This document shows positions 10,781-40,939 of a stretch of 64,000 nt of DNA, piece by piece. A program made the translations under genes and the position numbers. Under the pieces are notes generated by a model. That model worked only from the letters and a program-made list of their open reading frames with translations. It searched no databases and was not told where the DNA came from. Source of the stretch: Mobula birostris (taxonomy: Eukaryota). Position 1 is the stretch's first letter; every line of letters starts with the position of its first letter. The stretch spans positions 16,283,939-16,347,938 of the forward strand of contig NC_092394.1 of assembly GCF_030028105.1 (NCBI RefSeq), in the 5' to 3' direction.

Positions 10781-10879
10781 ACACCTCATCTTACATACCC
10801 CTTGAAATTAAGATAAATAGCTGACTGATGGTCAAGGCTCACTCGATGGACCATATGGCTCATTTCCTCCCTGTATCTC

Positions 10880-11200: not shown

Positions 11201-11324
11201 TATAGCCATTCGTTTTAAGCAGTTTACTAGCTGCGGAACGCATTAGTTGATTCCAAGAACACAAGGAACCTGTATTAACACAGGTTCCTTCACTCCTTAG
11301 CAGCTGCAGTATTCTTTGAAGTGC

Positions 11325-11339
11325 TCAATATGGTTTCTT
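11325..11339 (-). CDS. TAPBPL: Tapasin-family gene exon 8 (KKPY-stop, KKxx ER-retrieval motif)
   Basis: Strong acceptor CTTTCTTTTATCTCTCCTGCAG then AAG AAA CCA TAT TGA in phase 0. Confidence 0.8.
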   Translation of the reverse strand, partial: KKPY

Positions 11340-13215
11340 CTGCAGGAGAGATAAAAGAAAGATCACTGCACATGACAATAGCCATTATCATATCGGTAAT
11401 AGAATGCTTTAAAAGTGTTAAATTATCTTTATATTAACTTCTACTTTGTCAGGACTTGAGTTTTATGGAAAGATTGAATAGGTTGGGACTTTAGGATCTA
11501 GAGCGTAAGGGAATGAGGGGAGATTTGATAGAGGTATACAAAATTATGAGGGGTATGGATAGGGTAAATGCAAGCAGGAGGTTGGGTGAGACTACAACTA
11601 GAGGTCACGGGTTAAGGGTGAAAGGTGAAATGTTCAAGGGGAACATCTTCACTCTGAGGTCGGTGAGAGTGTGGAACGATCAGGCAGTGAAAGTGGTGGA
11701 TGTGGGTTTGATTTCAATATTAAATGAAATTTGGATAGGAACATGGATGGCTGGGCTATGGTTCAGGTGCAGGTCAATGGGAGCAGGCAGATTAATAGTT
11801 TGGCACAGACTGAAAGGGCCAACTGGCTTGTTTCTGTGCTGTAGTTTTCTACGACTCTGTGGCTCTTGGTTTAATTTTATTGGTTCAACACAAGCCAAAC
11901 TCTAGCCCATGTTTCATGTTAGTAAACGAACTAGTTTCACCCTCACGCATCCCTCCCCAGAACTACTGTGAAACACTTACCTGCTCCAAAATCCAAGGAA
12001 CCCTCTTCAGTGGGCACACTCAGAGACACACTAACTGATCCAGGTCCTCCTCCACCCGCCAACTACCTTAAACCACCCCCACACCGCCCCAGAACACTAA
12101 CTTCAAATCCTCCTTGACAACACAAACACCTACGTCAGGATGCTGTTAATCCACTATAGCTCGGCATTTAACACCATCGTTCCCACAATCCTGATTGAGA
12201 AATTGCAGAACCTGGGCCTCTGTACCTCCCCCTGCAAATGGATCCTCAACTTCCTAATCGGAAGACAATAATCTGTGTGGATAACATATCCTCTTCGCTA
12301 ACGATCAACACTGGTGCACCTCTGGGGTGTGAGCTTAGCCCACTGCTCTACTCTCTCTATACCCATGACTGTGTGGCTAGGTATAGCTCAAATACCATCT
12401 ATAAATTTGCTGACGATACAACCATTGTTGGTAGAATCTCAGGTGGTGACGAGAGAGCGTACAGGAGTGAGATATGCCAACTAGTGGAGTGGTGCCACAG
12501 CAACAACCTGGCACTCAACGTCAGTAAGATCAAAAAGCTGATTGTGGACTTCAGGAAGGGTAAGACGAAGGAACACACACCAATCCTCATAGAGGGATCA
12601 GAAATGGAGACAGTGAACAATTTCACGTTCCTGGGTGTCAAGATCTCTGAGGATCTAACTTGGTCCCAACATATCGATGTAGTTATAAAGAAGGCAAAAC
12701 AATGACTGTACTTCACTAGGAGTTTGAAGAGATTTGGTATGTCAACAAATACACTCAAAAACTTCTATAGGTGTACTGAGGAGAGCATTCTGACAGGCTG
12801 CATCACTGTCTGGTATGTGCGGGGGGCGGGGGGGGGGGGGGTAAGACTACTGTACAGGACCGAAAGAAGCTGCAGAGGGTTGTAAATCTAGTCAGCTCCA
12901 TCTTGGGCACTAGCCTACAAAGTACCCAAGACATCTTCAGGGAGCGGTGTCTCAGAAAGGCAGTGTTGATTATTAAGGACCTCAGCACCCAGGGCATGCC
13001 CTTTTCTCACTGTTACAACAGGGAGGAGGTACAGAAGCCTGAAGGCACACACTCAGCAATTCAGGAACAGCTTCTTCCCCTCTGCCATTTGATTCCTAAA
13101 TGGACATTGAACCCGTGAACACTACCTCACTTTTTTAATATGTATTATTTCTGGTTTTGCATGATTTTAATCTATTCAATATACATATACTGTAATTAAT
13201 TGATTTATTTATTTA

Positions 13216-13246
<31 letters not shown>

Positions 13247-16200
13247 CTTCTATATTATGTATTGCATTGAACTGCTGCTGCTAAGCTAACAAATTTCACG
13301 TCACATGCCAGTGATAATAAACCTGATTCTGATTCTGATTAATAAGTTTACTATGCACTGGCCCCAGTCTCATCTACAGCCATGGAGTCACAGAGAGGTA
13401 CAGCCCAGAAACAGGCCCTTCGGTCCATCGAGTCTCTGCCCACCATCAACCACCCATTTATAATAATCCTACATTAATCCCCCACATACCTATCAGCTCC
13501 TCCCCGGATTTTACGACTGACCTGCACACTGGGGGCAATTGATAACGGCCACTTAACCTATCAACCCACACGTCTTTGAAATGTGAGAGATCACATGGAC
13601 GTAAGGAGAGCATGCAAACTGCACACAGACAGCACCCATGGGCAGGATTGAGCACAGCTCTTTGGCATTGCGAAGTGAGGCACAGGCTCAACTCACTGCA
13701 CCTCTTTCCACAATCAGTTCCTGTGTTGCACACTGGTACACTCCCCCCAACCTCTCGTCCACTTTTTACTTCCCCCACCCCCCCACAATGACAGACCCAT
13801 CAGCCAGTTAGGTGTTTCCGAATGAAGCTGCTCTCTTAGACCATGAGACACAGGTACAGAGTTAGGCCACTCCGCCCAGTGAGTCCGCTCCGTCATTCCA
13901 TCATGACTGACTTATTTCCCTTCTCAACACCATCCTCCTGTCTTCTCCCTGTAACCTTTGACGCCCTGACTAATCAAAAACCTATCAACCTCTCTGCCTT
14001 AACGAATTGGCCTGCTCGGCCGCCTGTGGCAATGAATTCCACAGATTCACCGCCCCCTAGCTCAAGAAATTCCTCTTCATCTGTGTCCTACATGGATGTC
14101 CCTCTAATCTGAGGCTGTGCTCTCTGGTCCTAGACTCTCCCACTACAGGAAACATCCTCTCCACACCCACTCTACCGTGGCCTTTCAACCCCCCTCTTGC
14201 TCCGACACCCTGCTCTGGATCTTTTCATCTCTAATTGCCGATGAGATTATCAACAGTCTCAACCTTAGCACTCTCAACTCCTATTCGAAGCTTAGGCCTT
14301 TAAAGGCACTTCCCTCCACTCTCTCCGCACGAGTCCAACCTTACCATCGAACCAATGGACGGGGCGGGGGGGGCGGGTGCTGGTGTCGCCTGTCGTCTGT
14401 CAGACTGACCTTGACCTCACATCAGGCCAGATACCCAACCATGAAAAAGTGAGCAAAGCTCATGAAATCACTCAACAACAAGAATCTGTCAGAGAAAGAA
14501 TGCAGCTATATTGCCCAATAAGTTACAAGATCCGGTCAAATTACAGTTTTGTACAGTTTTCCTAAATGAAACTTTGTAGTATTAAAATTCAACATTCCTC
14601 TTACCTTGCTTTTAACCATAACTGCAAAACAAAGGGTAGAGAGTCGTTAGAATTCACATTAGCACACGCACATCATACAGTCAACTTAACACAAGAGATT
14701 CTGCAGATCCTGAGCAACACACACAAAATGCTGGAAAAGAATCAGCAGGTCAGGCAGCATCCATGGAGGGATGCTGAGAAACATCCAGGGATGCGCTGGG
14801 ACACAGCATCAGTGAAGTAACATAGGGTCATCAGGTGTTTCGGGTCTTTGAACATCAGACCCCCTCGTCCAGGTGACCCAGCCAGGGTTGATCAGGCCCG
14901 GCTTGTACCCCAGCAGCATTGGTCCACAGGTCACGCCTCTTCATCCACAGCCATCTGGGGCTCGCTCAACAGCCTCAGTGACAGGTCCTGATGGCTTTTT
15001 CTCTGCAGACCCTGTAATTCCAGGGAGAGAGTAGGTTCTGCACAGCGAGCAGACAGCAACATCTCTACACCCCACCTCTGTAGGCTCGCATCGTGCCCTC
15101 CACCCCTGTCTCTGGCACTACTATACCAGCTCCTGGTATTTGTAAATAAATATTCAATGCTTCTGGCTGAGACCCTCTTTCTGGGTCCCTCTGTCCTGAT
15201 CAAAGACGCTTTGTCCTGATGAAAGGTCTTGACCTGAAACATCGACTGTTTAATTCCCTGCCAGGCCTGCTGAGTTTCTCCAGCATTTGATGTGTGGTTG
15301 ATACAGTGAACTGACACATTTTCCACACTGACATCGCTCAAAACTCATTTTCGTTTCCTTTTTTGAAAGTGAATCAGAACGTCACAAACTCTTGGGTGCT
15401 CTTCTCTGAGGATTAGTTGGATTTGTCACATGTACATTGAAACACAGAGTGAAATGCATCGCTTGTGTGCTCTGGGCAGCCTGCAAGTGTCTCCACGCTC
15501 CTGAAGCCAACAGCGCACCCCCACAACTTACTAACCCTAACTCGTACGCCTTTGGAACGTGGGAAGAAATGAAGCACCCAGAGGAAACCCACGTGGTATT
15601 GGGGAGAACGTACATACTTACAGACAGCGGCAGGAAGCGAGCCCTGACTGGCCATCGCTAGCGCTGTACAGCAATTGCGCTGCTACGCCCCCACGTTAGA
15701 AGTGCAAACACACTGGTTATTACTAAACATCAGATACAGTCGTCTTGTTCAGAGCAACCCCCAGGCCAGGTCCATCAGAACGGCTAACCCTGCTGGGGTG
15801 ACAGGGGCTCTCTGTGTTACCAGCTCAGCTCTGAGCTTGATCTTTGTCTTTCTCTAGCTGAGCCCATCTCATGCAGAGCTTCAGTTCCTGGTGGAGTCCG
15901 TTAGCTTGGGTCAGAACAGGTTAGACCAGTCCTTTATGTGGCTGTGGATCTAGTGTCATGTTCAACCAGACTGGATCACTGCAGCTGGTCCTAACCCGAG
16001 GGTTCCAGAATACATCCAGTTAACCAGGCACAACAGTGGGCTTGGAACCCACCCCCTTTACCCAGCCAGTAACTTACCACTGTATCAAAGCACCATCAGC
16101 ACTTTTGGGCTCAGGAATCCCGTGACAAGTCATTCTTGCAAAACCTCATCTCAGAAATGTATGAAAGTTCTGATTTGTCACCTTAACCTGTCTCATTCTG

Positions 16201-19200: not shown

Positions 19201-22200
19201 CATAGTCAAACCATCTCAGCCTCGAACACACTCAATGACTCAGACCACTGGGTAAAGAATGGCAAAGTTTCACCACCCTCTTTGGGAGGAGAATCCCCTT
19301 CTTCTCATGCTTATATCTGAAATCTAGACTCTACCGTCAAAGGAATCAGCAACCCGTCAAAGTTCAAAGTAAATTTATTATTAAAGTACGTCTGCTACCC
19401 TGAGATTCATCGTTTTGCAAGCATTCACAGTAGAACAAATAAATACAACAAAATCAATGAAAAACCAAGCACAAAGACTGACAAACAACCAATGTTTAAG
19501 GGAAGACAAGATGTGCAAATAGAAAATAATAAATAAATAGATAGATACTGAGAACATGAAGCCCCCTCAGAACTGTATATGTTCCCTTGAGATCACTTCA
19601 TCTCTGCCAGCAGTTCCTAGGACCATGATGATATCGAACTGGTCTTTTAGAAAGGTTATACAATCGTGGGGCTGAAATCAGGACCTCAAGAGATGGGCTC
19701 ACCTCTTAACAGCAGAGAACACAAAACAGCGAGCACTCACCTTTATTCAAGTAGATGAGCAAGACGATCAGAAGAACACATAAGAATAGGAAGAATGCCA
19801 ACAATACAAAGGACTGTTCTATCTCGACTTGTGCTGAAGAGACAAGAGAAAATACTGAGCATGATTGCTTTAAGATTTCTGTCACACATTACTGCGAAGA
19901 TTAGAACGATGGTGATGAGTTTCCATTCTGCTCTTGTTAAGTCTTATCCCTGACATCTGCATCACCAGAAACTAATAGTTCTTCATTCATTTGCAACCAC
20001 ATCCGTTTTCTCATTACTTAATCAGGTGTGCACCCGATCCAAATATCCCGAGACAAGTGTCTGCTCACCTCTGTATTAGAGTGGCGTCCGCATTGAAGCT
20101 TCACTGGTTTCTGTTTCCCAGGTCACTTACGTTAATACACTGTGACTGATCCAAGCCTCACTGACAGACCAAAAGACTACAAGACATAGGAGCAGAATCA
20201 GCCCATCGAGTCTGCTCTGCCATTCCATCACGGCTGATTTATCATCCCCCTCAACCCCATTCTCCAGTGCTCTCACCGTAGGTGCCCAGACTAATCAAGA
20301 CCCTATCAACCTCCACTTTAAATATACACCAATCTGAGAAGTGATCGTCCTGATGTTTTCAATAATAATAATATTGTATGGGTGGCAGGGCGGAAATACG
20401 TCTCCTCCTTCCTTCTGCAAGCCTGCATGTCACCCTTGGGCAAAGTGTAGCACCTGCTTAGCCTCCCCGATCGGGGTCACGTGAAACATGGGAGCCGGTG
20501 TTGGATGGCTGTATGAGCAGCTGGTGCACATCACAAGTCCTGGTAATGTGACCACTGACGAGCTCTGAAGAGTACTGATAATGGCTGGGATTACCCGAAT
20601 TCTAAAGACACTGCCCAGATAAAGGCAATGGCAAACCACTTCTGTGGAAAATTTTGCCAAGAACAATCTTGGTCAAGGAAAGACCATGATCGCCCACGTC
20701 ATACGACACGGCGCATAACAAATGAATAATCCACATGGAACTCCAATGTATCTTCATCAGTGAAGTCTGCCCACTGCTTACCTTCCACGTTCACGTGGAC
20801 ATAACGTTTAATCGGCTTCTTCAAGCCAACATGGTCAACCAGGCAAACGTACGTGGCACCATTGTCTCTGAGGGAGGCGGTGAACCTGAAGTAACCCGTC
20901 ACATTGTAAGTGCCATCTCTGTTGGGCTTATGGGATGAGAAGACGGTGTTGGGTATGTAGACGGGTACGAGGTGCTCCTGGCCCTGATGCCGCTGCCATT
21001 TCATCGTCACGTCAAGTGGGTAAAACATCTCTGCATCACATGTCAGCTCCTGCTCGTCCCCTTCCCTCAGGGAGAGAGCACTGTGGCTTAGGGAAACCAA
21101 GGGAGGCTCTGCAAAGGGAACAGCCAAATATTCTGTCAGAGAAGGGCACAACACCCGGGTGGATGCTCACAAAAAAAAGCTGAAAATGCTGGAAACACTC
21201 AGCAAGTCAGCCAGCATCTGTGGAGAGAGAAACTGAATTAATGTTTCAGGTCAATGACTTTTCATCAGAACTGTGAATAGTTAGAGACAGGCAAGCCTTA
21301 GGCTGCAGAGAGTTGGTGGGGAAACAGGGAACAACCCTGAAGGCTGGAGAGACTTTAATGACAAAAAAGCCGGTGGAAATGGGATAAAGGCATAAAGGCT
21401 CTTTCTGACAAACGGTCTTCAACTTACAACATTCACTCTGTTTCTCTCTCCGCAGATGCTACCTGACCTGCTGAGTGTTTCCAGCATTCCCTGGCTTTAT
21501 TTCAGATTTTCAGCATCTGCAGTGCTTTCATTTTCAAACAAATTTTGGGTCTAGGGTTGGTGAAACTGAGGATAGCAATATCTTTATCAGGAAACCGTTG
21601 AGCTTAATCTTGAGGGTGTTAGGCTCCAGCGTGCTGAGTTAAAAGACGAGGCACCTTTGACTTTATATTCAACACGAGCAGAGGTGTGCAGGAAACCAAG
21701 AACAGAGGAGATACTGGAATCATAATTAAAGTGACACAGTGGTCAGAAGTTAGGAGTTAGGCACAGGCTGAACAATGATGGTCTACATCTCCAAAGTGTC
21801 TTGCTTGCTTCCCTAGTGTAGAGGAGAATGTGTTGTGAGCACTAAAAACAGAATACTGAACCATAGGTACAAGTAAATGGATAGACATGGACTGATTAAG
21901 GATAGCCCAGCATGACTTCGTGAGTGGTAGGTCACGTCTAGCCAATCTCATGGAGTTTTTCGAGGAAGTTACCAGGAAAGTTGATGAAGTCAAGGCAGTG
22001 GATCTTGTCTGCATAGACTTTAGAAAGGCATTTGACAAGGTCCCGCATGGGAGGCTGGTCAAGATGGTTCAGTCGCTTGGCATCCAAGATGAGGTAGTAA
22101 ATTGGATTAGACATTGGCTTTGAGGGAGAAGCCAGAGTGGTGGTAGAGGGTTGCCTCTCTGACTGGAGGCCTGGGACTAGTGGTGTGCCGCAGGGATCGG

Positions 22201-25200: not shown

Positions 25201-28200
25201 CAGTCTTTTCCGATGAGCTTGCAGTTTAAGTGCGTTTAATTTAGCCGTTCCGTTAGGTTTGTCAGAAACCCTAAATCCAGTAGCCATGCATTATCTGACA
25301 GTTTCTTGTGCTCCTTGTTTCTTTATTTCAGGCAGCAAGTCAACAAACCGTTGCAGCACAGCACCCTCACAAACCTCCTGACAGACTGAATATTCGAATG
25401 GACAGTTTCCTTTGTTAGACTGAATGTTCAATCTGCCACATTTTTCAGGTGTTTTGTATTGGTAAACTGTTACTGAGACACTAGTATAAGTTTCAGGGGT
25501 ACGCAAGCTAATGACACCACTGTTTTTTGTTTCCCAGTTCTTTTACATTTGGGGAATGTTGGAATTTAAAGGGGGAGAAATGTTGTAATGTGATCATTAT
25601 AAAGATAATACCAATTAGGATAATGGTAATATATTAATACTCCCGCTACGGAAAGCTGTTTGTAAACAGAGGTTGTTTCCAGGGTTGCGGGGTATTACTT
25701 CCGGTCTTTTCTGCGCCTGTGTGTATAAGCCCCTCCGCCACATTGGTTTTGCCGTCCCAGATAAAGTTGTTCCTTTGGACATGAAGTTGTCAAGTGGTCC
25801 TTTTTCAAAGTAGAAGTTACTGCAAAGGGTATGAAGTATTGTAATATTCTTAAAGAAAGACAGCTATGGCCTGTTTGATATGCTAGTTATAGAGTTTTCT
25901 TGGTTGAATTAATTTGAAAGTTTGACAAAAGTATTTTATGTAATTCAAATACAATTAGCCCAAGTAAAAGGCCTCAAGTTGGAAGTACAATCTGAGTTGC
26001 TTTTTCTCTAAACGATTTAGTAGGTAGATCTTGCCTTTCACTAAGGCTGAGGTAGGGGATCTTGGGCTTAAAAAAGTTGGTGACCCTGATAACAACCTAC
26101 AAAGTTACATAAATAATATTGTCAACCCGTGGGTGGGATGGCCTCTTAAAATATGGAAAACTATTATAAAAGAATATAAGCTAGTGAGAGACATTGCAAT
26201 TCTTAAATGGTGTGCATATGACTCGGATTTTATGCTGAATAAACTGGATGCTAGATTTAAGGCCTGGACAGCTAAAGGAATAACAGCCATTTGCAATATA
26301 ATGAAAGAAGAAACATTGTTCAGTTTTGAAATGCTCAAAGAGAAACACTTATTAGAAAAACAAGACTTTTACCGGTATTTACAGATGCGACAGTATGTTA
26401 ATAGGAGGGTTAAAAATGTAACCCAGGCAAGTACATGTCTGATAGAGCTATTTAGAAAAGCATATAATTCAGACAACGGTAGTAGAAGAATTTCAAGTGT
26501 GTATAAGGGTTTGTCAAATCTTAAAACAAATTCGACTTCATATTAAAAAATGGGAGAAGGAGGGAGGGATAATAATATCTGAGGAAGATTGGACAATAAT
26601 ATGGAGGTATCAATGGAAGTGTACCAGTTCACAGAAATGGAGGGAGTTCGGGTGGAAAAACTTGATATTTTATTACACCCTCTCAGAAATCCCATTATGA
26701 TAGTAACCCCCGTTTGCTGGAGAAATTGTGGAAATCAAAATGCAAACCATTATCATATTTTCTGGGAATGCCCCGTTATCAAAGACTATTGGAGTGGGAT
26801 ACATAATGCCCTACAAGACATCTTTAAATGTAAAATACCCTTAGAGAGTAAGACCATATATTTTGGGTACATACCTCAAGAATGGTTGAAAAGAGATAAA
26901 TATTTAATGAATGTACTGCTGGTGGCTGGTAAAAAGACCCTTACTGTACCAGGAAATGGTTATCACAGGAGAGCCCAACTTTAAATGTATGGATGGAAAT
27001 TACAGTGGACATTTACAAAATGGAGGAGATAACAGCATCTGTTAATCATAAGTTGGAACAATTTTATTCATACTGGAAAAAATGGTTTAACTACATAACA
27101 CTTCATAGGCCTGATTTTGTTCTCACAAGTCAATTAATAAGTTGTAAAAAAAATCACTCCCTCTGTACATAGTTTTCTTCTTTCGATTGTTCTTTCTTTC
27201 CTCTCCTTTCTATAAGTATTACCTCAGATAAATATTATGTGGAGATTTGTGACATATACATATGTACAGTATCTGAAATACATCTTATGGAAATGTTTGT
27301 CTGATGATGATACTCAATAAAAAATAAATAACAAAAAAAAAGATTGGCGACCACTAATGTATTCCTTCTCCTCTCCCCCACCCACCTTCTTATTCTGGCT
27401 TCTTCCCTCTTCCTTCCTCGCCCTGATGAAGAGCTTCGGCCTGAAACATCGAATATTTACTCCTTTCCATATATGCTGCCCACCCTGCAGAGTTCCTCCA
27501 GCATTTTGTGTGAGGGCTCTCAAATGTGTCTCTACATTGATAGCTTCCCGTTCCCATTCTCTCTCTCTCTCTGTGTCTCCTTTCTTAAACATTCGTTCTA
27601 ATCCATAGGAACATTTCCAGAACCTCTGAAGCCATGTAAGATGATAAGCTCTTTCATAACCCTGGGAAGTATGATCATCAGGTCCTTGGAATTCATTAGG
27701 CTTTAAGCTTCAACTAAAATGGCTGAAAATGATTTGCCAATTGCTAGTATTAACCTTAACCACTGCATTGATACACTTCAAGCTAAGAGAAACAAAGTCC
27801 TTTTCCAGCTTTAAACCAACCCTTATTCTACTGGTTGTATAGTACAATAATTAAACTGGACTCCTTCTCTACCAGTACAGCCCTACAGGCTCTGGATTTT
27901 CTGCTAATTTGCTAAAAATTTTCATCCAGGTTCTATACGAATAAAATAGGCAGCTTACCAATAATCTGCACGCTGATGGTGTGTGTACCAAAGAGAGGAG
28001 GGACATAAACCAAACAGGTGTAGGATCCTTCTTTGCTGATATTAATATTTCTTAAGCGGAGGGACGCATTCCCATTCTTGATCTGGTCCAAGGATACTTC
28101 AACTCCCTTCTCAATGTCTTCAATCTGCTGAGACCGTCCATTGTAGGAGAACAATTTCTTCTTTACCCCCCTGTATTGGTATCTCCAGTCAATGTTAGCA

Positions 28201-31200
28201 GCAGCATTGTGATCAACCTTGAAGCCACAGTCCAGAACCAGGTCTTGATTCAGTTTGGTTTTAATCAGTGGTGTACTTGTGTGAATGATATAGTTCACTA
28301 ACAGATAAAAACAGAAATAACCAAATTATTAGATGGTCTCACTAGACCATTCAGATTTCACTTACCTCAAAAGATAAAGGTACGGAATATTGTGAGCAGT
28401 TTTGGGCCCCTTATCTAAGGAAGAATGCACTGGCATTGGGGAAGATCCAGAGGAGATTCACAAGAATGAGGGTTTGATGGCTCTGGGCCTGTACTCACAG
28501 CTTAGAAGAACGAAGGGGTTCTTAGTGAAAGATTGAAAGGCCTAAATAGAGTGGATGTGGAGTGTGGGGGGGGGGGGGGTCGAGGACCAGAGGGCACAGC
28601 CTCAGAATACAAGGATGTCCCTTTAGAACAGAGATGAGGAGGAATTTCTTTAGCCAGAGGGTGGTGAATCCATGAAATTCATTGCCACAGATGGCTGTGG
28701 AGGCCAAGTCATTGGGTGTATTTAAGGCCGAGGTTGGTGGGTTCTTGATTAATAAGGGTATCAAAGGTTATGGGGAGAAGGCAGAAGAATGGGATTGAGA
28801 GGGATAATAAATCAGCCCTGATGGAATAGTGGAGCAAACTCAATGGCCCAAATGGTGTAATTTTGCTCCCATATCTTATAGATCTATGGTCTAAAAGCTT
28901 ACCATTTTAATATAACTATTTACATGCCTTCTGGCCTTCTGATCTTATGTGTTCCTGTGGAAACACAGCTGTGCAAAGCCCTACAAGGGATAAATTATTA
29001 AATAGATACAAAAAGGAGCTAAAATATTTCTAATGGGAAAATAGATCAAAGGAAATAGGAAGCTTCGATGATGACATCTGATCACCAAACACATTGAATC
29101 ACAGAGCAAGAACAAAGAGGTGAATCTCCTACCCCTCCTCCTTCTCTTTCTCCCATGGTCAACTCTCCTCTCCTATCAGATTCCTTCCTCTCCAGCCCTT
29201 GACCTTCCTGGCCCACCTGGCTTCACCTATCATCTTCTACCTATCCTCCTTCTCCTCGCACCAGCTTTTCCTTCTGGCATTTACCCCCTTCCTTCTCAGT
29301 CCTGAAGAAGGGACTTGGCCCGAAATGACAACTGCTTATTCAATTCCATTGATGCTGCCTGACCTGCTGAGTTCCTCCAGCATTTTGTGTGTGTTGACTT
29401 AAGCTTGCATCGAACAGTTCTTTATCTTGGTTCAGCCAGAATGTGTTTATTTTCTGGCCATCAGCATTGTCAGGCAATACAGTGTTGTTTTAAAAAAAAC
29501 TCTGTACATCAGTACATCAGCTTTTGGCTCCAATCATAAATTGTAACTAAATTGGTAAAGGCAATAATAATAACTGCACCTTAAATATTGACCCATGTTT
29601 CACTGCTCTCTCCACACCACCCCCCAAGCAGGTTCAATAATGCTTTCAGAAATGAATGTAATTGGTCAGTAGGCACAAACAAGGCTCACATTTTGATATT
29701 CACATTCTTCAAAACAAAGTCATGACTGAAATTATAAAACTAAATGGCAGAGTTTTACAGTATGAAAAGAACAAATTTTTTTTTTAAGCAGTCTTAAGGG
29801 ATCCTCTTTAGAATTGACCAAAAATAAAGAATGCATGCCCTAGAACAGCGATCCACGGCCTTCCCTTGTGCCAAGATGAGGCCAACCTCAGGGTGGAGGA
29901 GCAACACCTTATATTCCATCTGGGCAGCCTCCAACCTGATGGCATGAATATTGATTTCTCCTTCTGGTAAAAAATATTTTCCCTCCCCTCCCCTTCCCTA
30001 CTCCTCTTCCTCTATTCTCCACACTGGTCTCTTACCTCTTCTCGTCAGCCTATCACTTCCCCCTGGGCCCCCTCCTCCTTCCCTTTTTCCACTCTCCTCT
30101 CCTATCAGCCCTTTACCTTTCCCACCCACCTGGCTTCACCTATCACCTTCCAGCTAGCCACCTTCTGCTCCCCTACCTTCTTACTCTGGCATCTGACCCC
30201 TTCCTTTTCAGTCCAGAAGAAGGGGCTCAGCCTGAAACATCACTGTTTAAATAGATGCTACCTGATTTGCTGAGTTCCTCCAGCATTTTGTGTGTGTGTG
30301 TGTGTGTGTGTTGCTATCTTTTCTTGTACAGGTTTCAACAAATTATATTGTACTTCTTCAGTCCGTATAAACTTTAAGATTAAGATTGCCCTTTATTTGT
30401 CACATGTACATCAAAACATCGGAGCATACAGTGAAATGCATCATTTGGGTCAATGACCAATGCAGGCTGAGGACGTGCTGGCAGTAGCCCCCAAATTCTG
30501 CTATCAGCACGGCAAGACCACAATTTACTAACCCTAACCCATATGTCTTTGGACTGTGGGAGGAAACCAGAGCACCTGGAGGAAACCCAAGCGGTCACGG
30601 GGAGAACATACAAACTCCTTACGGACAGCGGCAGGAAATGAACCTGGGTCGCTGGCACCATAAAACGTTATGCTGTTATGCCACCGTGCTGCCCCGTTAC
30701 CTTGGACTGACACAGTGTCTGTGTTTCCAATGGGTGGGTCTTCTTCATCAGTTGGACTTTCACGCTCCTTATTGTCCTCGTGATTAGGCGCTTTTAGCTT
30801 CCTCATGAATCCAGTTACGGTGAACTTCCCATGTCTGTGCTTTACAGTCACCGTGAGCCACTTGTCTTCACCTTGTTCCTCGTCCTTCTGCGGCCAGGGA
30901 GCATGGAATCCATAGGTGGAGTGTCGGCTAATCTCACATTCCAAATCATCAGGTTTTGTGCCCACGTACTGGAATATGTCTAAGGAAGAATCTGTAAGTG
31001 AAAGGATTACATTTACGTTAAAAGGGAAGGCAGTACATGACTATGAGAAGTTCAAAGTAAATTTATTATCAAGGTACATATACGTCACCATATACAACCC
31101 TGAGATTCGGTTTCTGGCGGATATACTAAACATAACAGAATCAATAAAAGGCCGCATCCAACAGGACAGACAAATCTGGCAATGTTCTTGTAAATCTAAC

Positions 31201-34200
31201 TTGCATTTGCTAATGAGGCCCTTGTTATAACAGGGTAACTAAAATTGTACACAACATTCCAAGTGTGGCCTCCTAATCTAGTTAGAGTGCCAGTTTTACA
31301 CCAAATCCCTTTATTGCTTTCCAGCCACATCAAATTGCATTGGATGGTAATGTCTGCTTTAATCCCAGTTTCGTCCATCTTCCAAAGTGCGGGTTAGTTA
31401 AAATGAAATGTGCCTGTTCATGCTTTGTCTCCTCTCCTTATAAATCAGAGGATCTACTGACTTACCATGAACAGTAGCTTCGGAAAAAGGATCTAGCGCT
31501 TTCCCAGCGTATGTGACGCATGAGCTCTTCTTGGGCTTCCAGCCGGGTACAAATGTTGATTTTAACCAGCATTTTGATGACAAACTCCCCAATGAAGATG
31601 GCAGAGTCTGTCATCGAAACGTCGGTTAAAATCGACACCTAGACCCGGCTGGAAGCTGAGAAGAGTTTATGCACAGCTCTGGAGATCCGCTAGTGAAATA
31701 AAATTAACAAGCCTGTCTTACATAATAAGCAAGTATTGATGTTTTAGGTGACAGAGTAACAACTTCCCAAATTATTAGAACCACTATGTTACAAAGGATG
31801 TGTGCCACAGATAATTAATTGCAGAGAATGCTTGATGTTTCCACGTTACCTTTAACTTTAAAACGAATTGCTTCCTCATTTGTATCGAAATCGCCATACA
31901 GCAGCAATGCCTTCCTCAAGATGATCGTCTGCCCTATCGGAAGAGACCCATCATCTTCCTTCACTTCTCGAAAACTGCAATCCAGCTTTCTGTTTGGAAG
32001 CACGTGTCCATTCTCGGCCAGTGCAATTCCTGAGGAAAGAAAAGCAAAGTAGGAAACGAAAGGGAAATCTTTAAACAAAGGTTGAACAATGTACTATACT
32101 GCCACTTCACTGAAGAAATAGAAATATCTTTGTACTGATAGTGAGTACTTCAGCCTCGACATCTATATTTTTTCTCTCATGTCTGGAATGTCTGTAATAA
32201 TTTTGGCCATAAACAAACTTGCATTAATCAGGAAGCTCTCAGTTCAAACCCTACTCTGGAGACCTAGTCAGTGGTTGACAAATATACCCAGTACTGTGGC
32301 ATCCCCTCAGTACTGTACTGCTATGTAGACCTTTATGATCAAAGGATTCAATTAAGACACTGGCCAGCAGGTCAGGCTTGAGGTGCTTGGTGACCTTTTG
32401 TTCTTCTCTTGTAGACCCGTTATGAATTGTTTCTATATTGGTCCAATTTTATTTATGAAGTGTGCTACATAATGGGACAAAAATGTATAACTCTTTCATC
32501 TGAAGCACTGACTTCTATTAGCAGTGTTATCTTTCCTTTGCACCCCACCCATTAATTTCACTTATAGTGTAGTGGTTAGCACAACACTTTACAGTACAGG
32601 CGATCCAGGTTTAATTTCCGTTGCTGCCTATAAGGAGTTCGTACGTTCTCCCTGTGACCGCATGTGTTTCCTCCGGGTGCTCCGGTTTCCTCCCACAGTC
32701 CAAAGACACACCAGTTGGTAGGTTCACTGGTCAATGTAAACTGTCCCGTGAAACAGGCCAGGGTTAAATCAGGGGATTGCTGGACGGCGTGGCTCGAAGG
32801 GCCAGTTTCATGTTGCATCCCAATAAATAAATTATACAAAGATGACTGGTCTACGGTGATGTTCATATCATTTGAGAAAGTACATCTCTTGTCCCTATAA
32901 CGTTAGAAGCACAACTATATTTGACAATCTTCTCCACTTCACTGTCTCTTGCAAAATCATGAAAGCATTCACTTAAATTTGAAATTGCCAAAATATCTAC
33001 ATTATGCACCACATAGACCTACTTTGTTTCACAAGCAAGATGGAGCCATGTGGATGCATATCTTGGGCTTTTTCATGAAAAAAACCCTGCCGCGTACACT
33101 AAGATAAATGACCAGTTAGCCTGACTTCAGTGGTTGAGAAGAATCTGAAGTCCATTATAAAGGATGAGGTTTCGGGGTACTTGAAGGCACGTGATAAGAG
33201 AGGCCAAAGTCAGCATGGCTTCTTTAAGAGGAAATCTTGCCTGACAAATCTGTTGGAATTCTTTGAGGAAATAACAAGCAGGATAGACAAAGGAGAGTCA
33301 GTGGATGTTGTTTATTCGGATTTTCAGATAGTATTTGACGAGGTACCACACACGAGGCTGCTTAACAAGATAAGAGCCCATGGCATAACAGGAAAGATAC
33401 CAGCATGGATAGAAACACACATCAAAGTTGCTGGTGAACGCAGCAGGCCAGGCAGCATCTCTAGGAAGAAGTACAGTCGATGTTTCAGGCCAAGACCCTT
33501 CGTCAGAACTAACGTTAGGATGTTAGCCCTGACAAAGGGTCTCGGTCTGAAACATAAACTGTACCTCTTCCTAGAGATGCTGCCTGGCCTGCTGCGTTCA
33601 TCAGCAACTTTGATGTATGTTGCTTGAATTTCCAGCACCTGCAGAATTCCTCGTGTTTGAGCATGGATAGAAAATTGGCTGACTGGCAGGAGGCGAAGAG
33701 GGGAATAAAGGGGACCTTGTCAGGTTGGCTGCCAGTGACTAGTGATGTTCCACAGGGATTGGTGTTGGAACCACTTCTTTTCATGTTATATATCAATGAT
33801 TTGAATGATGGCTCTGTGGCCAAGTTTGTGGACAATACGAAGGTAAAAAGGTAGGTAGTGCTGAGGAAGCAGGGAGTCTGCAGAAGGACTTGAACAGGTT
33901 GGGAGAATGGGGAAAGAAGTGACAGATGGATACATAGTGGAGGGAACTGTGCAGCAATGCACTTTGATAGAAGGAATAAAGGTGTAGACTATTTTCTAAA
34001 CAAGAAGAAAATTCAAAAAACAGAGCCGCAAAGCAACTTAGGAATCCTCAAGCAGGATTTCCTAAAGGCTAATTTGTAAATTACGTCGGTGGTAAGGAAA
34101 CAAATGCAATATTAGCATTCATTTCGAGAAGGGTAGAATATAAAAGCGAGAATATCATGCTGAAGCTTTATAAGGCATTGGTCATATCGCACAGAGTATT

Positions 34201-37200: not shown

Positions 37201-40104
37201 AATCAAATTGGTGAACCTTCTTTGTACTCCCTCTATGGCAAGAATGTCTTTCCTCAGATTAGGGGACCAAAACTGCACACAATACTCCAGGTGTGGTCTC
37301 ACCAAGGCCCTGTACAACTGCAGTCGTACCTCCCTGCTCCTGTACTCGAATCCTCTTGCTATGAATGCCAGCATACCATTCGCCTTTTTCACCGCCTGCT
37401 GTACCTGCATGCCCACTTTCAATGACTGGTGTACAAAGACACCCAGGTCTCATTGCACCTCCCCTATTCCTAATCGGCCACCATTCAGATAATAATCTGT
37501 TTTCCTGTTTTTGCCACCAAAGTGGATAACTTCACATTTATCCACATTAAATTGCATCTGCCATGAATTTGCCCACTCACCTAGCCTATCCAAGTCACCC
37601 TGCATCCTCTTAGCATCCTCCTCACAGCTAACACTGCCGCCCAGCTTCGTGTCATCTGCAAACTTGGAGATGTTGCATTTAATTCCCTCATCTAAGTCAT
37701 TAATATATATTGTAAACAACTGGGGTCCCAGTACTGAGCCTTGCAGTACTCCACTACTCACTGCCTGCCATTCTGAAAAGGTCCCATTTATTCTCACTCT
37801 TTGCTTCCTGTCTGCCAACCAATTCTCTATCCACATCAAGACCATACCCCCAATACCGTGTGCTTTAAGTTTGCACACTAATCTCCTGTGTGGGACCTTG
37901 TCAAAAGCCTTTTGAAAATCTAAATATACCACATCCACTGGTTCTCCCCTATCCACTCTACTAGTTACGTCCTCAAAAAATTCTGTGAGATTCATCGGAC
38001 ATGATTTTCCTTTCGCAAATCCATGCTGACTTTGTCCGATGATCGTACTACCAAACACATCTTTATCTCAACCCCCCCCCCCCACTCTCCACTCCCTTCA
38101 TGGTTCCCTCGTCCATTCGTCCCTCCCCACTAACCTCCCTCTAAGTAGTCACTCCTGCAGGTGGCCAAAGTACTCCACCTGTCCATTCACCTCCATTCAG
38201 AGCCCTAAACATTTGCTGAATGGTGAGGCAACACTTCACCTGCTAATCTGCTGAGGTCGCCTATTTTATCTGATGCCCCCAATGCAGCCTCCCCTACACT
38301 GGAGAGGCCTGCTGTAAACTGGGGGACCGCTTTGCCGAGCACCTCGGCTCCATCCGCCAAAAGCGGAACTTCTCAGTGGACAAACATTTTATTCCCAATT
38401 CCCATTCCTGTTCGGACATGTTGCTCCGAGGCCTCCTCTTGTGCAAAAGATGAGTCCATCCTCAGGATGGAGGAGCACCATCTGTCCAGGTAGCCTCCAA
38501 CCTGATGGCATGAACATTGGTCTCTCCCTCCGATATAAAAAAAATCCCTCCCCCTTTCTCCTCTTCTACTCCCCACTCTGGCCTCCTACCTCCTCTCACC
38601 TGCCTATCACCTCCTCCTGGTGCTTTTCCTCCTTCTCCTCCTCCTATGGTCCACTCCCCTCTCCTATCAGATTCCTTCCTCTCCAGCCCTTTATCTTTAC
38701 TACCCACCTTGCTTCACCTGTCACCTTCCAACTATCATCATCATCCTCCTCCTCCTCCTCCTCCTCCTCCTCCTCCTCTCCCCCCCCCCACCAAGCTTTT
38801 TATTCTGGCATCTTCCCCCTTCTTTTCCAGTCCTGAAGAAGGGTCACAGCCCGAAACATTGACTGTCCATTCATTTCCATGAATGCTGCCTATCCTGCTG
38901 AGTTCCTCCAGCATTTTCTGTGTATTGCTCTGATTATAAAAATCAAACAGCATAAAAAAACAGGCCCCTCAGGCCAGCCCATCCAAGCTGATCAAGACAT
39001 CTACCTGACCTAGCAACATTTACCTGCATTTCTCCCATATCCCCCTTAAACCTTCTCCATCCATGTACCTGTCCAAATGTTTTTTAAACATTGTAATTCC
39101 ACCTGCCTCTAGTTTTTTTTTCTGGCAGCTTTTTACCATACATCTACCACCCTCTGTGTGATAGAATTGTCTTTCAGTCACCTTTTAAACCTTCTGCCTC
39201 TCACATTAAATCTATGTCCTATAGTTTTAGACTTCCCCCACCCTGAGAAACAGATTGTGACCATCAGGCTTATCTACCCCCCTCAGGATTTTACTCTGTA
39301 ACAGGAGTTCCCAACCTTTTTTATGCCATGGACCCCTATCATTAACAGACAGATCCGTGGACTCCAGGTTGGGAACCCCTGCCCTTCAGCCTTCTATGCG
39401 TCAGAAAAAAGATGTCCCACTCTACCCAGCCTTTCCTTGTAACTCAAGCCCTCCGGTCCCAGTTACGTCCACATGAATCTAATCTGCACCTTTTCCAGTT
39501 GAATAACATTGTCCGTACAGCTGAGCTACCAGAACTGAACATGGCAGAAAATGTGATCTCTCCAATTGATAGCCCGAAAAGCATGTCCGACGCATTCTTC
39601 CCCATCTTCTCTACCTGTACAGCCTATTTCAGGGAACTATACACATGCACCCATACCCGTTGACCTCTTCCAGAACATTCTCCATGACTTTTCGTCCTGG
39701 TTGATCGTATCAAACTCAAAACTACTGTGTGCTAAACTACATGCCAAGGAAATCAAAAAACACGTCCAACAGTCATTAACAAATCTGGTCTTTTTTCCTC
39801 AAAAAAAAATTGCAAAGAAAAGCATGGATGATATCTAATCTGTCCGCTGGGGCCCCGAGGAACCAGTTCCTGCCTGGTTTATGGAGTACGCCCCTTGGGA
39901 GACTGTCGCTTGCGGCCTGAGTTTGCAATTATACCGCCCGAACTCGCCTTTTTGTTTCTAGCGCTCGCGTTTGACCTGAGGGGCGCCGGAGATCGAACGC
40001 GGACGCTCAGGTAAAATAAATGCCTCGTCCGGTGAGTTCCGCTTAGCCTAAAAACGAGTGGTGGGCTTACCAGCAACCAGAACGTAAAGGCTCAGGTAAG
40101 ACAT
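11325..40104 (-). CDS. TAPBPL: Tapasin-family type I membrane glycoprotein (tapasin-related / TAPBP-like), 8 coding exons, 431 aa
   Basis: join(complement 40071-40104, 31850-32029, 30701-30991, 27959-28297, 20782-21108, 19741-19833, 14605-14621, 11325-11339) = 1296 nt, all GT-AG, phases 1,1,1,1,1,1,0, open to TGA. Signal peptide, N-domain with LDC and CEISR...W motifs, IgV, IgC1, TM, KKPY terminus. Family assignment is firm; exact orthology (tapasin, TAPBPR or a third lineage) is not, so the symbol is provisional. Confidence 0.9.
11440..11850 (+). mobile_element. CR1 LINE 3' fragment
   Basis: ORF 11513..11905 ([18 protein letters not shown]...TRGHGLRV). Confidence 0.85.
12110..13340 (+). mobile_element. 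Rex1/Babar-type LINE, 5'-truncated
   Basis: ORF 12238..12705: [44 protein letters not shown]; 3' UTR with (TTAC)n and a (GATTCT)n tail at 13325-13340. Confidence 0.88.
13380..14180 (-). mobile_element. CR1 3' fragments and a V-SINE fragment
   Basis: CR1-type 3' UTRs (CAGGCCCTTCGG, TTAGGCCACTCCGCCC) and a SINE-like segment at 13560-13690. Confidence 0.65.
14605..14621 (-). CDS. TAPBPL: Tapasin-family gene exon 7 (17-nt micro-exon, (V)MVKSK)
   Basis: Acceptor CTCTCTACCCTTTGTTTTGCAG, exon TTATGGTTAAAAGCAAG, donor GTAAGA; converts phase 1 to phase 0, joining the TM exon to KKPY. Confidence 0.75.
15213..15248 (+). ncRNA. Hammerhead motif in an old Penelope-like pseudo-LTR
   Basis: GTC-CTGATGA-A-AGG(TCTTGA)CCT-GAAA-CATC-GAC, followed by the pseudo-LTR tail CCTGCTGAGTTTCTCCAGCATTTGATGTGTG. 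Confidence 0.6.
15400..15700 (-). mobile_element. V-SINE (HE1-like)
   Basis: Plus strand GAAGCACCCAGAGGAAACCCACGTGG...GGGGAGAACGTACATACTTACAGACAGCGG is the reverse complement of the V-SINE head and core. Confidence 0.8.
16233..16313. mobile_element. About 80-bp hAT (Charlie-like) MITE
   Basis: TIRs CAGGGGTTCCCAACCT / AGGTTGGGAACCCCTA; 8-bp flanks CCACAGAC / CCATAGAG (6/8); second copy in opposite orientation at 39302-39381. Confidence 0.75.
16320..16990 (-). mobile_element. CR1 LINE 3' fragments
   Basis: ORF 16614..16841 ([29 protein letters not shown]) and a (TTCTATG)-type tail. Confidence 0.85.
16996..17270 (+). mobile_element. V-SINE (HE1-like)
   Basis: GCATGGCAGTTAGCGTAG A-box-like, GGGTTCCATTCCC B-box-like, GTCAGGAGTTTGC...GTGGGTTTCCCCCAGG core. 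Confidence 0.75.
18200..18910 (+). mobile_element. Rex1/Babar-type LINE 3' fragment
   Basis: CTCAAAAACAGTTACTTTCCCCAAGCAGTAAGGCTGATC (ORF2 C-terminus) and a (CTTGAAT)-type tail at 18885-18910. Confidence 0.55.
19741..19833 (-). CDS. TAPBPL: Tapasin-family gene exon 6 (transmembrane)
   Basis: Acceptor TTCTCTTGTCTCTTCAG, donor G|GTGAGT, 93 nt phase 1-1, encoding [31 protein letters not shown]. Confidence 0.9.
20374..20724 (+). mobile_element. RTE-related short non-autonomous element (Bov-A/Sauria-like motifs)
   Basis: AAGGCAATGGCAAACCACTTCTGTGG (BovB/RTE 5' UTR motif) followed within about 60 bp by an RTE-like 3' end GACCATGATCGCCCACGTCATACGACACGGCGCATAA. Confidence 0.6.
20782..21108 (-). CDS. 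TAPBPL: Tapasin-family gene exon 5 (IgC1 domain)
   Basis: EPPLVSL...[17 protein letters not shown]...[10 protein letters not shown]...YVCLVDH; acceptor TTCCCTTTGCAG, donor G|GTAAGC; 327 nt. Confidence 0.95.
21170..21530. mobile_element. Old Penelope-like pseudo-LTR pair in inverted orientation, with hammerhead remnant
   Basis: 21180-21235 and 21430-21490 are reverse-complementary; minus-strand AGTT-CTGATGA-AAAGTCATTGACCT-GAAA-CATT-AATT at 21236-21272. Confidence 0.6.
21890..23245 (+). mobile_element. CR1 LINE, RT domain to 3' UTR, degenerate
   Basis: ORFs 21920..22123 ([11 protein letters not shown]), 22137..22496 ([11 protein letters not shown]), 22506..22901 ([14 protein letters not shown]); (ATGACT/ATGACTT) tail near 23225-23240; small AT-rich insertion at about 22835-22897. 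Confidence 0.92.
23276..23540 (-). mobile_element. Penelope-like RT fragment
   Basis: ORF 23276..23482 [19 protein letters not shown] matches the Penelope-like RT motif also seen at 35994 ([14 protein letters not shown]). Confidence 0.7.
24125..27356 (-). mobile_element. hAT DNA transposon (SPIN/GTF2IRD2-like remnant) with long internal inverted repeat, interrupted by an L1
   Basis: TIRs TAGTGGTCGCCAA (24125) / TTGGCGACCACTA (ending 27356); 8-bp TSD ATGTACTC / ATGTATTC; transposase remnant FFSNPF...[14 protein letters not shown] (24799..24981). Confidence 0.85.
25830..27341 (+). mobile_element. L1-clade LINE, 5'-truncated
   Basis: ORFs 26031..26546 and 26589..26984 with the ORF2 C-terminal zinc knuckle CWRNCG...HIFWECP; AATAAA and poly(A) at 27316-27341. 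Confidence 0.88.
27357..27515 (+). mobile_element. Penelope-like pseudo-LTR (3' part, split from 24040-24124 by the hAT)
   Basis: Degenerate hammerhead CTGATGAAGAGCTTCGGCCTGAAACATC at 27423-27450 and tail AGTTCCTCCAGCATTTTGTGTG. Confidence 0.7.
27959..28297 (-). CDS. TAPBPL: Tapasin-family gene exon 4 (IgV domain)
   Basis: LVLDCGFKV...IDWRYQYRG...[22 protein letters not shown]; acceptor TTTTATCTGTTAG, donor G|GTAAGC; 339 nt. Confidence 0.95.
28360..28890 (+). mobile_element. CR1 LINE 3' fragment
   Basis: GAGCAGTTTTGGGCCCCTTATCTAAGG...GAGATGAGGAGGAATTTCTTTAGCCAGAGGGTGGTGAATC...ATGGTCT tail. Confidence 0.85.
29120..29400 (+). mobile_element. Penelope-like pseudo-LTR with degenerate hammerhead
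   Basis: CAGTC-CTGAAGA-AGGGACTTGGCCC-GAAA-TGAC-AACTG at 29297-29334. Confidence 0.75.
29850..30312 (+). mobile_element. Penelope-like 3' fragment (GIY-YIG C-terminus and pseudo-LTR)
   Basis: Encodes [29 protein letters not shown], nearly identical to the end of ORF 57560..57886; hammerhead core mutated (CAGAAGA); ends in (TG)n. Confidence 0.85.
30380..30695 (-). mobile_element. V-SINE (HE1-like)
   Basis: GGAAACCAGAGCACCTGGAGGAAACCCAAGCGGTCACGGGGAGAACATACAAACTCCTTAC; starts a few bases from the exon 3 donor. Confidence 0.85.
30701..30991 (-). CDS. TAPBPL: Tapasin-family gene exon 3 (N-terminal domain, part 2)
   Basis: [26 protein letters not shown]...WP...KWLTVTVK; acceptor CCTTTCACTTACAG, donor G|GTAACG; 291 nt. 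Confidence 0.93.
31518..31672. mobile_element. Short palindromic pseudo-LTR derivative of a second Penelope-like family
   Basis: Reverse-complementary arms (CTCTTCTTGGGCTTCCAGCCGGGT... / ...ACCCGGCTGGAAGCTGAGAAGAG); hammerhead remnant ATGA-A-GATGGCAG(AGT)CTGTCATC-GAAA-CGTC at 31587-31625. Confidence 0.7.
31850..32029 (-). CDS. TAPBPL: Tapasin-family gene exon 2 (end of signal peptide, N-terminal domain part 1)
   Basis: [46 protein letters not shown]...IRFKVK; acceptor TTCTTTCCTCAG, donor G|GTAACG; 180 nt. Confidence 0.9.
32560..32850 (+). mobile_element. V-SINE (HE1-like), near full length
   Basis: A box GTAGTGGTTAGC, B box GGTTTAATTTCC, V core TTTCCTCCGGGTGCTCCGGTTTCCTCCCACAGTCCAAAGAC. Confidence 0.88.
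33416..33659. mobile_element. Asymmetric palindromic Penelope-like pseudo-LTR insertion with 14-bp TSD
   Basis: Direct repeat AGCATGGATAGAAA at 33402-33415 and 33660-33673; arms inverted about 33511-33524. Confidence 0.9.
33474..33510 (-). ncRNA. Minimal type I hammerhead motif, sense to the tapasin-family pre-mRNA (intron 1)
   Basis: AGTT-CTGACGA-A-GGG(TCTTGG)CCT-GAAA-CATC-GACTG; core intact, stem III CG changed to CA. Confidence 0.7.
36737..38045 (-). mobile_element. CR1 LINE, 5'-truncated, nested in the Penelope-like element
   Basis: ORFs 37450..38058 ([27 protein letters not shown]), 37159..37422, 36825..37088; ATAGAAACATAGAAA tail at 36741. Confidence 0.95.
38828..38865 (+). ncRNA. Minimal type I hammerhead motif
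   Basis: CAGTC-CTGAAGA-A-GGG(TCACAG)CCC-GAAA-CATT-GACTG: perfect 5-bp stem I, intact core, perfect stem II. Confidence 0.72.
38940..39650 (-). mobile_element. CR1 3' fragment containing an 80-bp hAT MITE (39302-39381)
   Basis: CR1 3' UTR and ORF2 C-terminus remnants; MITE TIRs CAGGAGTTCCCAACCT / AGGTTGGGAACCCCTG. Confidence 0.75.
40071..40104 (-). CDS. TAPBPL: Tapasin-family gene exon 1 (signal peptide [12 protein letters not shown])
   Basis: ATG at 40104, hydrophobic 11 codons plus G, donor G|GTAAGC; phase 1 fits exon 2; lies in a local CpG-rich patch next to an ISRE. Confidence 0.8.
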
Positions 40105-40136
40105 CACGAACTCCTATCGTGTAAACTGCTGTTCAT

Positions 40137-40152
40137 TTTCACTTTCGTTTCC
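40137..40152 (-). promoter_or_regulatory. ISRE / IRF-binding element
   Basis: GGAAACGAAAGTGAAA (two overlapping GAAANNGAAA units), 33 bp upstream of the predicted ATG. Confidence 0.75.
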
Positions 40153-40939
40153 CGGATTCAACGCGGAAGGCTTTCCGATTATAATAATAATCTTATTTAC
40201 AGAACACTTTTCATACAGACGTTGTAGTTCAAGGTGCTTTATGCAAGTACGGAAAGTCAAAAAGATGCTAATTAGAAGTAATGTAAAATAAATAGGGTTT
40301 GAATTGGCGTTTTAAAGTGTCGGGTGAGTCTGTATTCCTTATAGTTTTAGGTAATGGACTGCACAGTTTAGGAAGGTGACAAATCAACAAAGCTGACTTA
40401 CCAATTAACTTTTAAGGAAGAATGTTTAAATTTAGGAGACCGGCGGTAGGGGACCTGAAAGCTCGAGTAGGATTATAAAACGAAAGTGATTCTGTGATGT
40501 ACTCTGGTCCCTGAGCATTGAGAGCTCTTTTCAGAGGATGTGTGACGGCTGCTGGGTGGGGAGCTTGCTGATACCGACAATGACAATGCAAGGGGCGGTG
40601 GAGGGAAGATGGGTTGGTCAGGGAGATGGAGAGAGGGGAGCCCGGATGGGAAAGTCAAGAGCAGTTGTGGCCAACATTTGTCGTAGGGACTGTGAGACGA
40701 TGGGCTCCAGGAAGGCAAAAGAACATAGGAGGACATGCAAGATGGCGAGGTGGAATCCAGGGGGCCGAGAGATGGGGCAAAGACGGGGTTGGGGAAATGG
40801 GTTGCAGGAAATGGAAGGGGAGGTTTGATGGAGAAGTAGGTTAGAAGGCAAGATATGATCAATACACCACAGAACAATCGAAGGCAATTTAGCCCATGGG
40901 ATATTTAGGCTTTGAAGCTCCAACACAGGAAGGTGGTCA

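Follow-up and report, generated by a model that had tools for sequence, protein, structure and literature searches.

To our knowledge, tapasin (TAPBP) and TAPBPR are the sole known catalysts that choose the peptides displayed by MHC class I. A stretch of 64,000 nucleotides from the genome of the manta ray Mobula birostris (hereafter the window) holds a gene of the tapasin family next to EXO5, which raises the question of whether this gene is a displaced form of one of the two editors or a member of a further lineage, and what its product may do. An earlier note on this DNA had described the gene as a mosaic and proposed that it belongs to a third TAPBP-like lineage. Such a third tapasin paralogue was published in 2018, as bony-vertebrate sequences only (Grimholt, 2018, PMC5824609: teleosts, gar, frog, turtle, alligator, birds and marsupials). 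Its name, TAPBPL, is used here in the sense of that study, while the human gene symbol TAPBPL means TAPBPR, as does “tapbpl” in Verissimo et al. (2023). In agreement with the earlier note, the literature searched contains no functional characterisation of TAPBPL and calls its function unknown.

The gene lies on the minus strand and is divided into eight exons, whose borders were read directly and are all canonical GT-AG (Table 1). From the ATG at 40104 to the stop codon at 11325-11327 (-), the coding sequence amounts to 1296 nt and 431 aa, with splice phase 1 at all junctions up to that of exons 6 and 7 and phase 0 at exon 7/8. All 431 of the 431 residues are identical to the RefSeq protein “tapasin-like isoform X2 [Mobula birostris]”, so that the gene is already annotated and is no new gene; the eight exons, the two tiny cytoplasmic exons and the terminal KKPY that the earlier note had listed were all seen. 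The human tapasin gene has eight exons as well. For exon 3, an acceptor at 30979 was dropped on comparison with orthologues in favour of the one at 30991, 12 nt further upstream (TTACAG), which yields “DSSL” and thereby matches the skate orthologue. Exon 7 was selected from 383 AG..GT candidates, using a polypyrimidine tract, a good donor and two basic residues as filters; three candidates passed, the most skate-like of them was chosen, and the identity with RefSeq confirms the choice. Exons 2 and 3, each taken alone, gave no Pfam match and no PDB sequence match, so that the N-terminal domain is recognisable only by family alignment and fold. A tblastn search with the 431-aa query found no second tapasin-like copy in the window, which has no N runs and consists of vertebrate-like DNA with many retroelement remnants. 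Within intron 1, a pyrimidine-rich simple repeat is located at 38500-38900, where the ORF translations read poly-L, poly-P and poly-S, and the GC skew is about -0.37 across 36-40 kb.

Table 1. Features of the manta TAPBPL locus, numbered from the first letter of the window, and the promoter element in the locus sequences of relatives.
Feature	Position	Strand	Content and basis
Exon 1	40071..40104	-	ATG and most of signal peptide; donor GTAAGC; RefSeq residues 1-11
Exon 2	31850..32029	-	First half of tapasin-type N-terminal domain; splice sites and family alignment
Exon 3	30701..30991	-	Second half of N-terminal domain; CEISR, residues 90-94
Exon 4	27959..28297	-	Ig V-set (Pfam V-set 2.9e-10); sequons N245 (NAS), N254 (NIS)
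Exon 5	20782..21108	-	Ig C1-set (Pfam C1-set 3.2e-9); sequon N350 (NVT)
Exon 6	19741..19833	-	Connecting peptide and transmembrane helix; hydrophobicity scan
Exon 7	14605..14621	-	17 nt, cytoplasmic, VMVKSK; skate counterpart “VMDKHK”
Exon 8	11325..11339	-	KKPY and stop; dilysine KKXX-type tail; read directly
Putative ISRE/IRF-E	40132..40153	-	GGGAAACGAAAGTGAAAATGAA, sense strand, 42 nt upstream of ATG
EXO5	47594..55612	-	Coding exons 55196-55612 (Pfam Exo5 4e-9), 47594-47947 (Pfam Exo5 4e-23)
Element in relatives' locus sequences	L001 9877-9895; L003 ~9920; L004 ~9911; L005 ~9950

The protein begins with a signal peptide, which is followed by a tapasin-type N-terminal domain fused to an Ig V domain, an Ig C1 domain, a single TM helix and a 12-residue tail that ends in KKPY, and it is predicted to be a type I membrane glycoprotein. 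It carries exactly three sequons, which, like the CEISR motif, are those named before (Table 1), and seven cysteines. Six of these (29, 90, 192, 263, 305 and 370) show little or no variation across the family in a 50-sequence alignment, and the seventh (409) lies in the TM helix.

Sequences for the family tree were obtained by a HMMER scan with the V-domain exon, followed by name look-ups and word-index searches, and comprised named tapasin-family proteins from sharks, rays, chimaera, coelacanth, lungfish, sturgeon, teleosts, amphibians, reptiles, birds and mammals. In the maximum-likelihood tree (IQ-TREE, LG+C20+F+G4, 50 rows, 471 columns) they form three clades, TAPBP, TAPBPR and TAPBPL, each with support of 100/100. 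The TAPBP clade contains sharks, rays, chimaera, paddlefish, one teleost, amphibians and sauropsids, and the TAPBPR clade contains mammals, teleosts, bowfin, lungfish and four sharks. The manta protein falls outside both and within the TAPBPL clade (24 rows), which holds ten more cartilaginous-fish proteins as well as coelacanth, lungfish, sturgeon, paddlefish, four teleosts, two frogs, a caecilian, the California condor and the wombat. Forcing the cartilaginous-fish group to join TAPBP or TAPBPR was rejected by AU tests (p 0.0007 and p 0.0002, respectively), and the identity of the manta protein to members of these clades is ~22-28% and ~22-25%, respectively. The third clade is the TAPBPL of Grimholt (2018), whose chicken, frog and gar C-termini match it: in the supplementary alignment of PMC5824609 TAPBPL ends with ...KKKPY in gar, ...KPKPY in chicken and ...CKPY in opossum, and the frog TM segment reads ...LLTLILH, with which the condor, wombat and Xenopus rows of our alignment agree in their ends or TM segments. 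The manta gene is almost certainly a TAPBPL orthologue located outside the MHC, as the earlier note had suspected, and extends this third tapasin-family lineage to cartilaginous fish.

Orthologues of TAPBPL were found in at least 11 species of cartilaginous fish, where they are alignable over 91-100% of their length with every domain kept; they are not described in the literature searched. Two sharks, Heterodontus and Heptranchias, have one member each of TAPBP, TAPBPR and TAPBPL, which shows that the three lineages, as placed by the tree, are older than the split between cartilaginous and bony fish and would already have existed in the ancestor that sharks share with bony vertebrates. In the earlier study the duplication could be said only to precede the divergence of tetrapods from bony fish (Grimholt, 2018). 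Rooting with B7-H6 and CD276 over the V-C1 columns gave a basal polytomy, with a B7-H6 branch of 2.6 units and a non-monophyletic outgroup. No order of divergence is therefore claimed for the three lineages, and the earlier note's suggestion of an ancestral state of peptide editing is neither backed nor contradicted by this tree. Inside the TAPBPL clade RefSeq uses the names “tapasin-like”, “tapasin-related protein” and “tapasin-related protein-like” side by side, and this inconsistency might be taken to mean that the manta gene is a TAPBP or TAPBPR that was relocated from its usual neighbourhood. However, the separation of the three clades, the AU tests, the possession of all three lineages by single shark species and an EXO5 neighbourhood common with a marsupial TAPBPL (see below) all stand against relocation, which was tested and rejected and is hardly credible.

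EXO5, which the earlier note had already named as the neighbour, was recognised by two ORFs that match the start and the end of the Pfam Exo5 model. It is located directly upstream of TAPBPL and on the same strand in manta, the skate Rhinoraja (where the adjacency was confirmed by tblastn), the great white shark and the wombat. By contrast, EXO5 is absent within 10 kb of TAPBPL, the length of flank covered, in condor, clownfish, sturgeon and Xenopus, where a linkage over a longer distance may exist. TAPBPL is followed by a Rap-GAP gene on the other strand in sturgeon and condor and preceded by NCBP3 in Xenopus, and the caecilian locus has no neighbours within 10 kb. Since the adjacency is common to elasmobranchs and a marsupial, it is best explained as inherited from the gnathostome ancestor and then rearranged in several bony lineages; no mention of it was found in the literature searched. 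In human, we take EXO5 to lie at 1p34, RAP1GAP at 1p36, RAP1GAP2 and NCBP3 at 17p13 and TAPBPR at 12p13, and these regions to be paralogous. Their paralogy with 12p13 would fit an origin of TAPBPL by early genome duplications. Tapasin is linked to class I, TAP and PSMB, and the usual neighbours of TAPBPR are CD27 and VAMP1, whereas the manta window was found to contain only EXO5 and retroelement ORFs besides TAPBPL: none of TAP, PSMB, DAXX, CD27 and VAMP1 is among its long ORFs, a search that short exons could escape. In the clownfish (Amphiprion ocellaris) locus sequence (L003), two TAPBPL-like V-C1 genes, of 439 and 434 aa, stand in tandem at 10001-28611, the first within the span of an opposite-strand gene of 1144 aa (61-21265) and the second just past it.

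An AlphaFold2 model of the manta protein, built with the 50-sequence alignment, has a mean pLDDT of 87.2 and a pTM of 0.77. The top PDB matches in Foldseek are human tapasin (9rcv_B, 3f8u, 7qng, 6eny) and TAPBPR (5opi_C, 5wer, 7rno), which align over ~350-430 columns with E-values of 1e-22 to 1e-25, so that the modelled protein is predicted to have the tapasin/TAPBPR fold over its whole length. The next in rank is B7-H6, with the V-C1 half only, and the structural match of B7 V-C1 proteins amounts to a TM score of 0.76-0.82 relative to the target. When the V-C1 half was compared pairwise with human proteins, CD276 (B7-H3; 1.8e-28) and B7-H6 (NCR3LG1; 2.5e-22), which share the V-set and C1-set domains and give the highest-scoring pairwise sequence hit among PDB entries, scored better than TAPBPR (5e-21) and tapasin (3e-9). 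One view holds that the tapasin and B7 families are related. The nearness of the V-C1 half to CD276 and B7-H6 fits this kinship, and, to judge from these scores, shows the TAPBPL lineage to be a slow-changing one. It also speaks against the editing role proposed below, as it would make a B7-like role possible, in which TAPBPL is no intracellular chaperone of class I but a ligand or checkpoint molecule for a receptor carried by lymphocytes or NK cells; the rank of B7-H6 directly behind tapasin and TAPBPR points the same way, and T-cell co-inhibitory activity is reported for human TAPBPR/TAPBPL (PMC8103088). However, the ectodomain of B7 proteins consists after the signal peptide of V and C Ig domains only, whereas TAPBPL adds ~150 residues (exons 2-3 in manta) with a tapasin/TAPBPR-like fold, which are kept across the clade. 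Moreover, B7 proteins have neither CEISR nor a KKPY tail, the fold of the full-length protein is closest to tapasin and TAPBPR, and the conserved C-terminal dilysine points to retrieval to the ER, so that a B7-like function seems unlikely.

The features that tie TAPBPL to the rest of its family, and those that set it apart, become visible in the 50-sequence alignment. All three clades share C-E-I, and the alignment has CEISR as its consensus; since C-E-I is family-wide, CEISR, which TAPBPR has in exactly this form, is no mark of TAPBPR. A dilysine tail ending in KPY is normal for TAPBPL, and with both features accounted for in this way the description of the gene as a mosaic falls away. Within the TAPBPL clade identity is spread across every domain, and the tail is among the best-kept parts: it reads KKKPY in manta and the other cartilaginous-fish orthologues displayed and K.KPY in gar, chicken, kiwi, turtle, opossum, salmon, condor and wombat, giving K-x-K-P-Y from manta to wombat. 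No mention of a lineage-wide KPY ending as a signature of TAPBPL was found in the literature searched. TAPBPR, by contrast, has no K.KPY tail; among the aligned TAPBPR sequences, that of the lungfish Protopterus ends with KSKVQ, a dilysine of the KxKxx type, and the others differ. The TM helix of the manta protein has neither lysine nor arginine inside, and a basic residue at this place is never seen in TAPBPL, while K or R is present in seven out of seven TAPBP rows displayed. Architecture, the K.KPY end and the lack of a TM lysine are alike in manta and in bony-vertebrate TAPBPL, and TAPBPR has no TM lysine either.

In the N-terminal domain, exon 2 encodes Cys29 and a loop whose counterpart in the alignment is the editing (“scoop”) loop; the segment from Cys29 to K-A-L-L-L has a similar length in the three clades and a central hydrophobic residue, which is Leu in manta. 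The Glu of CEISR is presumably the residue known as E72 in tapasin and E102 in TAPBPR, by the C7-C71 disulfide numbering. According to a review, tapasin E72, the equivalent of TAPBPR E102, contacts class I residue 84. The D/E-W-R-x-Q motif is kept in TAPBPL, with D in manta where bony-vertebrate TAPBPL has E, and the family-wide GNAS sequon is present in the manta protein too. We take D/E-W-R-x-Q to be the TN6 MHC-binding patch, and the Gln of “AQQ” to be Q261 of tapasin and Q272 of TAPBPR. This Gln is not retained in cartilaginous-fish TAPBPL, which reads PPLFGTHT. The extra lumenal cysteine, which is the “unique cysteine” noted by Grimholt for TAPBPL and lies ~11 residues past the position of human tapasin C95, is present as (W/L)FTCT in sturgeon, Denticeps and condor, and as WFTCT in sturgeon, teleost and bird sequences, whereas manta has WLTVT and thus lacks it. 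Since the cysteine is missing in coelacanth, Xenopus and wombat as well, it is not diagnostic of the whole TAPBPL clade. The manta protein also has no spare lumenal cysteine for a mixed disulfide of the ERp57 type.

Upstream of the start codon, ray, skate, clownfish, sturgeon and Xenopus have a putative ISRE/IRF-E core in common, GAAAnnGAAAGTG. The element reads GAAATCGAAAGTGAAA in skate, GAAACGAAAGTGAAAGTG in Xenopus, GAAAGCGAAAGTG in sturgeon and GAAAGTGAAAGTG in clownfish, and is located 51-124 nt from the ATG in these four species, so that it is promoter-proximal as in manta; the condor element is more distant, at -427. A sense-strand GAAAnnGAAA less than 150 nt from the ATG is present in five of the six TAPBPL loci, where the chance of finding it is 0.012-0.029 per locus, as calculated for a 150-nt stretch from the motif density of each locus itself. 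A conserved ISRE of TAPBPL is not reported in the literature searched. In salmon, TAPBPL genes are upregulated with IFN-gamma, with a log2 fold change of 1.5-3.0 (PMC7573153). The element in five out of six loci together with this induction makes it likely that interferon control is ancestral for TAPBPL, from which it would extend to manta. The EXO5 neighbour, the KKPY tail and the interferon-response element have been kept for more than 400 million years, and such constraint, as read from the compared sequences, indicates that TAPBPL may have a real and specific role in antigen presentation that was lost in placental mammals.

For this role, we propose that TAPBPL is an interferon-inducible and ER-retained editor or chaperone of class I (or class I-like) molecules that acts without docking to TAP. 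Transcription of TAPBPL would be driven by IRF/interferon via the conserved promoter-proximal ISRE, and retrieval of the dilysine tail by COPI would keep the protein in the ER and early Golgi. There it would bind dimers of beta-2-microglobulin and MHC class I (or class I-like) molecules that are empty or sub-optimally loaded, using the same face as tapasin and TAPBPR, so that the dimers would be stabilised and the exchange of their ligands accelerated. TAPBPL would not dock on the TAP transporter, since the basic TM residue kept by the TAPBP clade is missing, and manta TAPBPL is presumably TAP-independent like TAPBPR. The six conserved cysteines, the CEISR Glu, the hydrophobic loop residue, D/E-W-R-x-Q and GNAS support such a mechanism. 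On the other side, the loss of the “AQQ” Gln in cartilaginous-fish TAPBPL, the missing “unique cysteine” of manta and the conservation of K-P-Y up to the last residue, which is stricter than a generic KKXX signal requires, would each count against it. We regard the mechanism as about equally likely to hold or to fail, whereas the whole, identity and mechanism together, is the best explanation of the locus and is favoured by a modest degree. The conserved features offer predicted handles for experiments, namely ER retention (KKPY), induction (ISRE) and TAP independence.

Two other assignments keep TAPBPL in antigen presentation and change its partners. In the first, TAPBPL is an alternative tapasin in a TAP-containing peptide-loading complex, which it joins by contacts other than the TM lysine. 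Manta TAPBPL resembles tapasin, the MHC-encoded editor of this complex, in its whole-length fold, the six cysteines, C-E, GNAS and a dilysine-type ER tail, and Grimholt (PMC5824609) speculated about loading complexes formed from duplicated CALR, ERp57 and TAPBP. However, the absence of a basic residue from the TM helix, in contrast to the TAPBP rows, the absence of a spare cysteine for an ERp57-type bond and the lack of linkage to TAP among the long ORFs of the window all argue against this assignment, and we consider it improbable. In the second, TAPBPL serves a client other than classical class I, either non-classical class I or, in animals without DM, class II. Tapasin, encoded in the MHC, and in sharks also TAPBPR serve class I, and still a third paralogue was kept for more than 400 My; in addition, the “AQQ” contact residue differs in the TAPBPL clade, and no DM-like editor of class II is known from cartilaginous fish or from most bony fish (PMC9586880). 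On the other hand, TAPBPL persists in birds and marsupials, which have DM (PMC9586880), and the remaining putative class I-contact motifs are retained, so that a different client is a minor possibility compared with the class I (or class I-like) editor proposed above.

In annotated batoid proteomes TAPBPL and TAPBP were found, and a word-based search with great white shark TAPBPR gave orthologues from seven shark species, but none from ray, skate or chimaera, among the matches listed (120 of 154). Batoids, manta included, may lack TAPBPR. Batoid transcript assemblies contain 17 sequences of a V-C1-TM protein of 271-292 aa, which was considered as a fourth lineage and rejected, as it nests among the batoid TAPBP proteins; the protein resembles a short form of tapasin without the N-terminal domain. 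Elephant-shark entries titled “Tapasin long form” likewise hint at short and long forms of tapasin. More speculatively, TAPBPL could be the slowest-changing lineage of the tapasin family and the nearest to the B7-like ancestor, induced by interferon, retained in the ER and independent of TAP, which would serve as the sole non-MHC editor of rays and skates and perhaps act on a separate set of clients, for example non-classical class I; we hold this extended picture to be rather doubtful.

The remaining long ORFs tested in the window are reverse-transcriptase or Penelope-like remnants. Upstream of the N-terminal exon of EXO5, an ORF of 104 aa at 62517-62831 (-) has no Pfam match and may represent either noise or a 5' exon, belonging to EXO5 or to a different gene. 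The two recognised coding exons of EXO5 are separated by a gap of roughly 7 kb, in which a 181-aa ORF at 52499-53044 (+) shows a weak match to the transposase-related DUF4371 (E 9e-4, under the Pfam cut-off). At 57563-58912 (-), a Penelope-like remnant consists of a reverse-transcriptase-like ORF followed by an ORF for a GIY-YIG endonuclease (Pfam GIY-YIG 5e-6).
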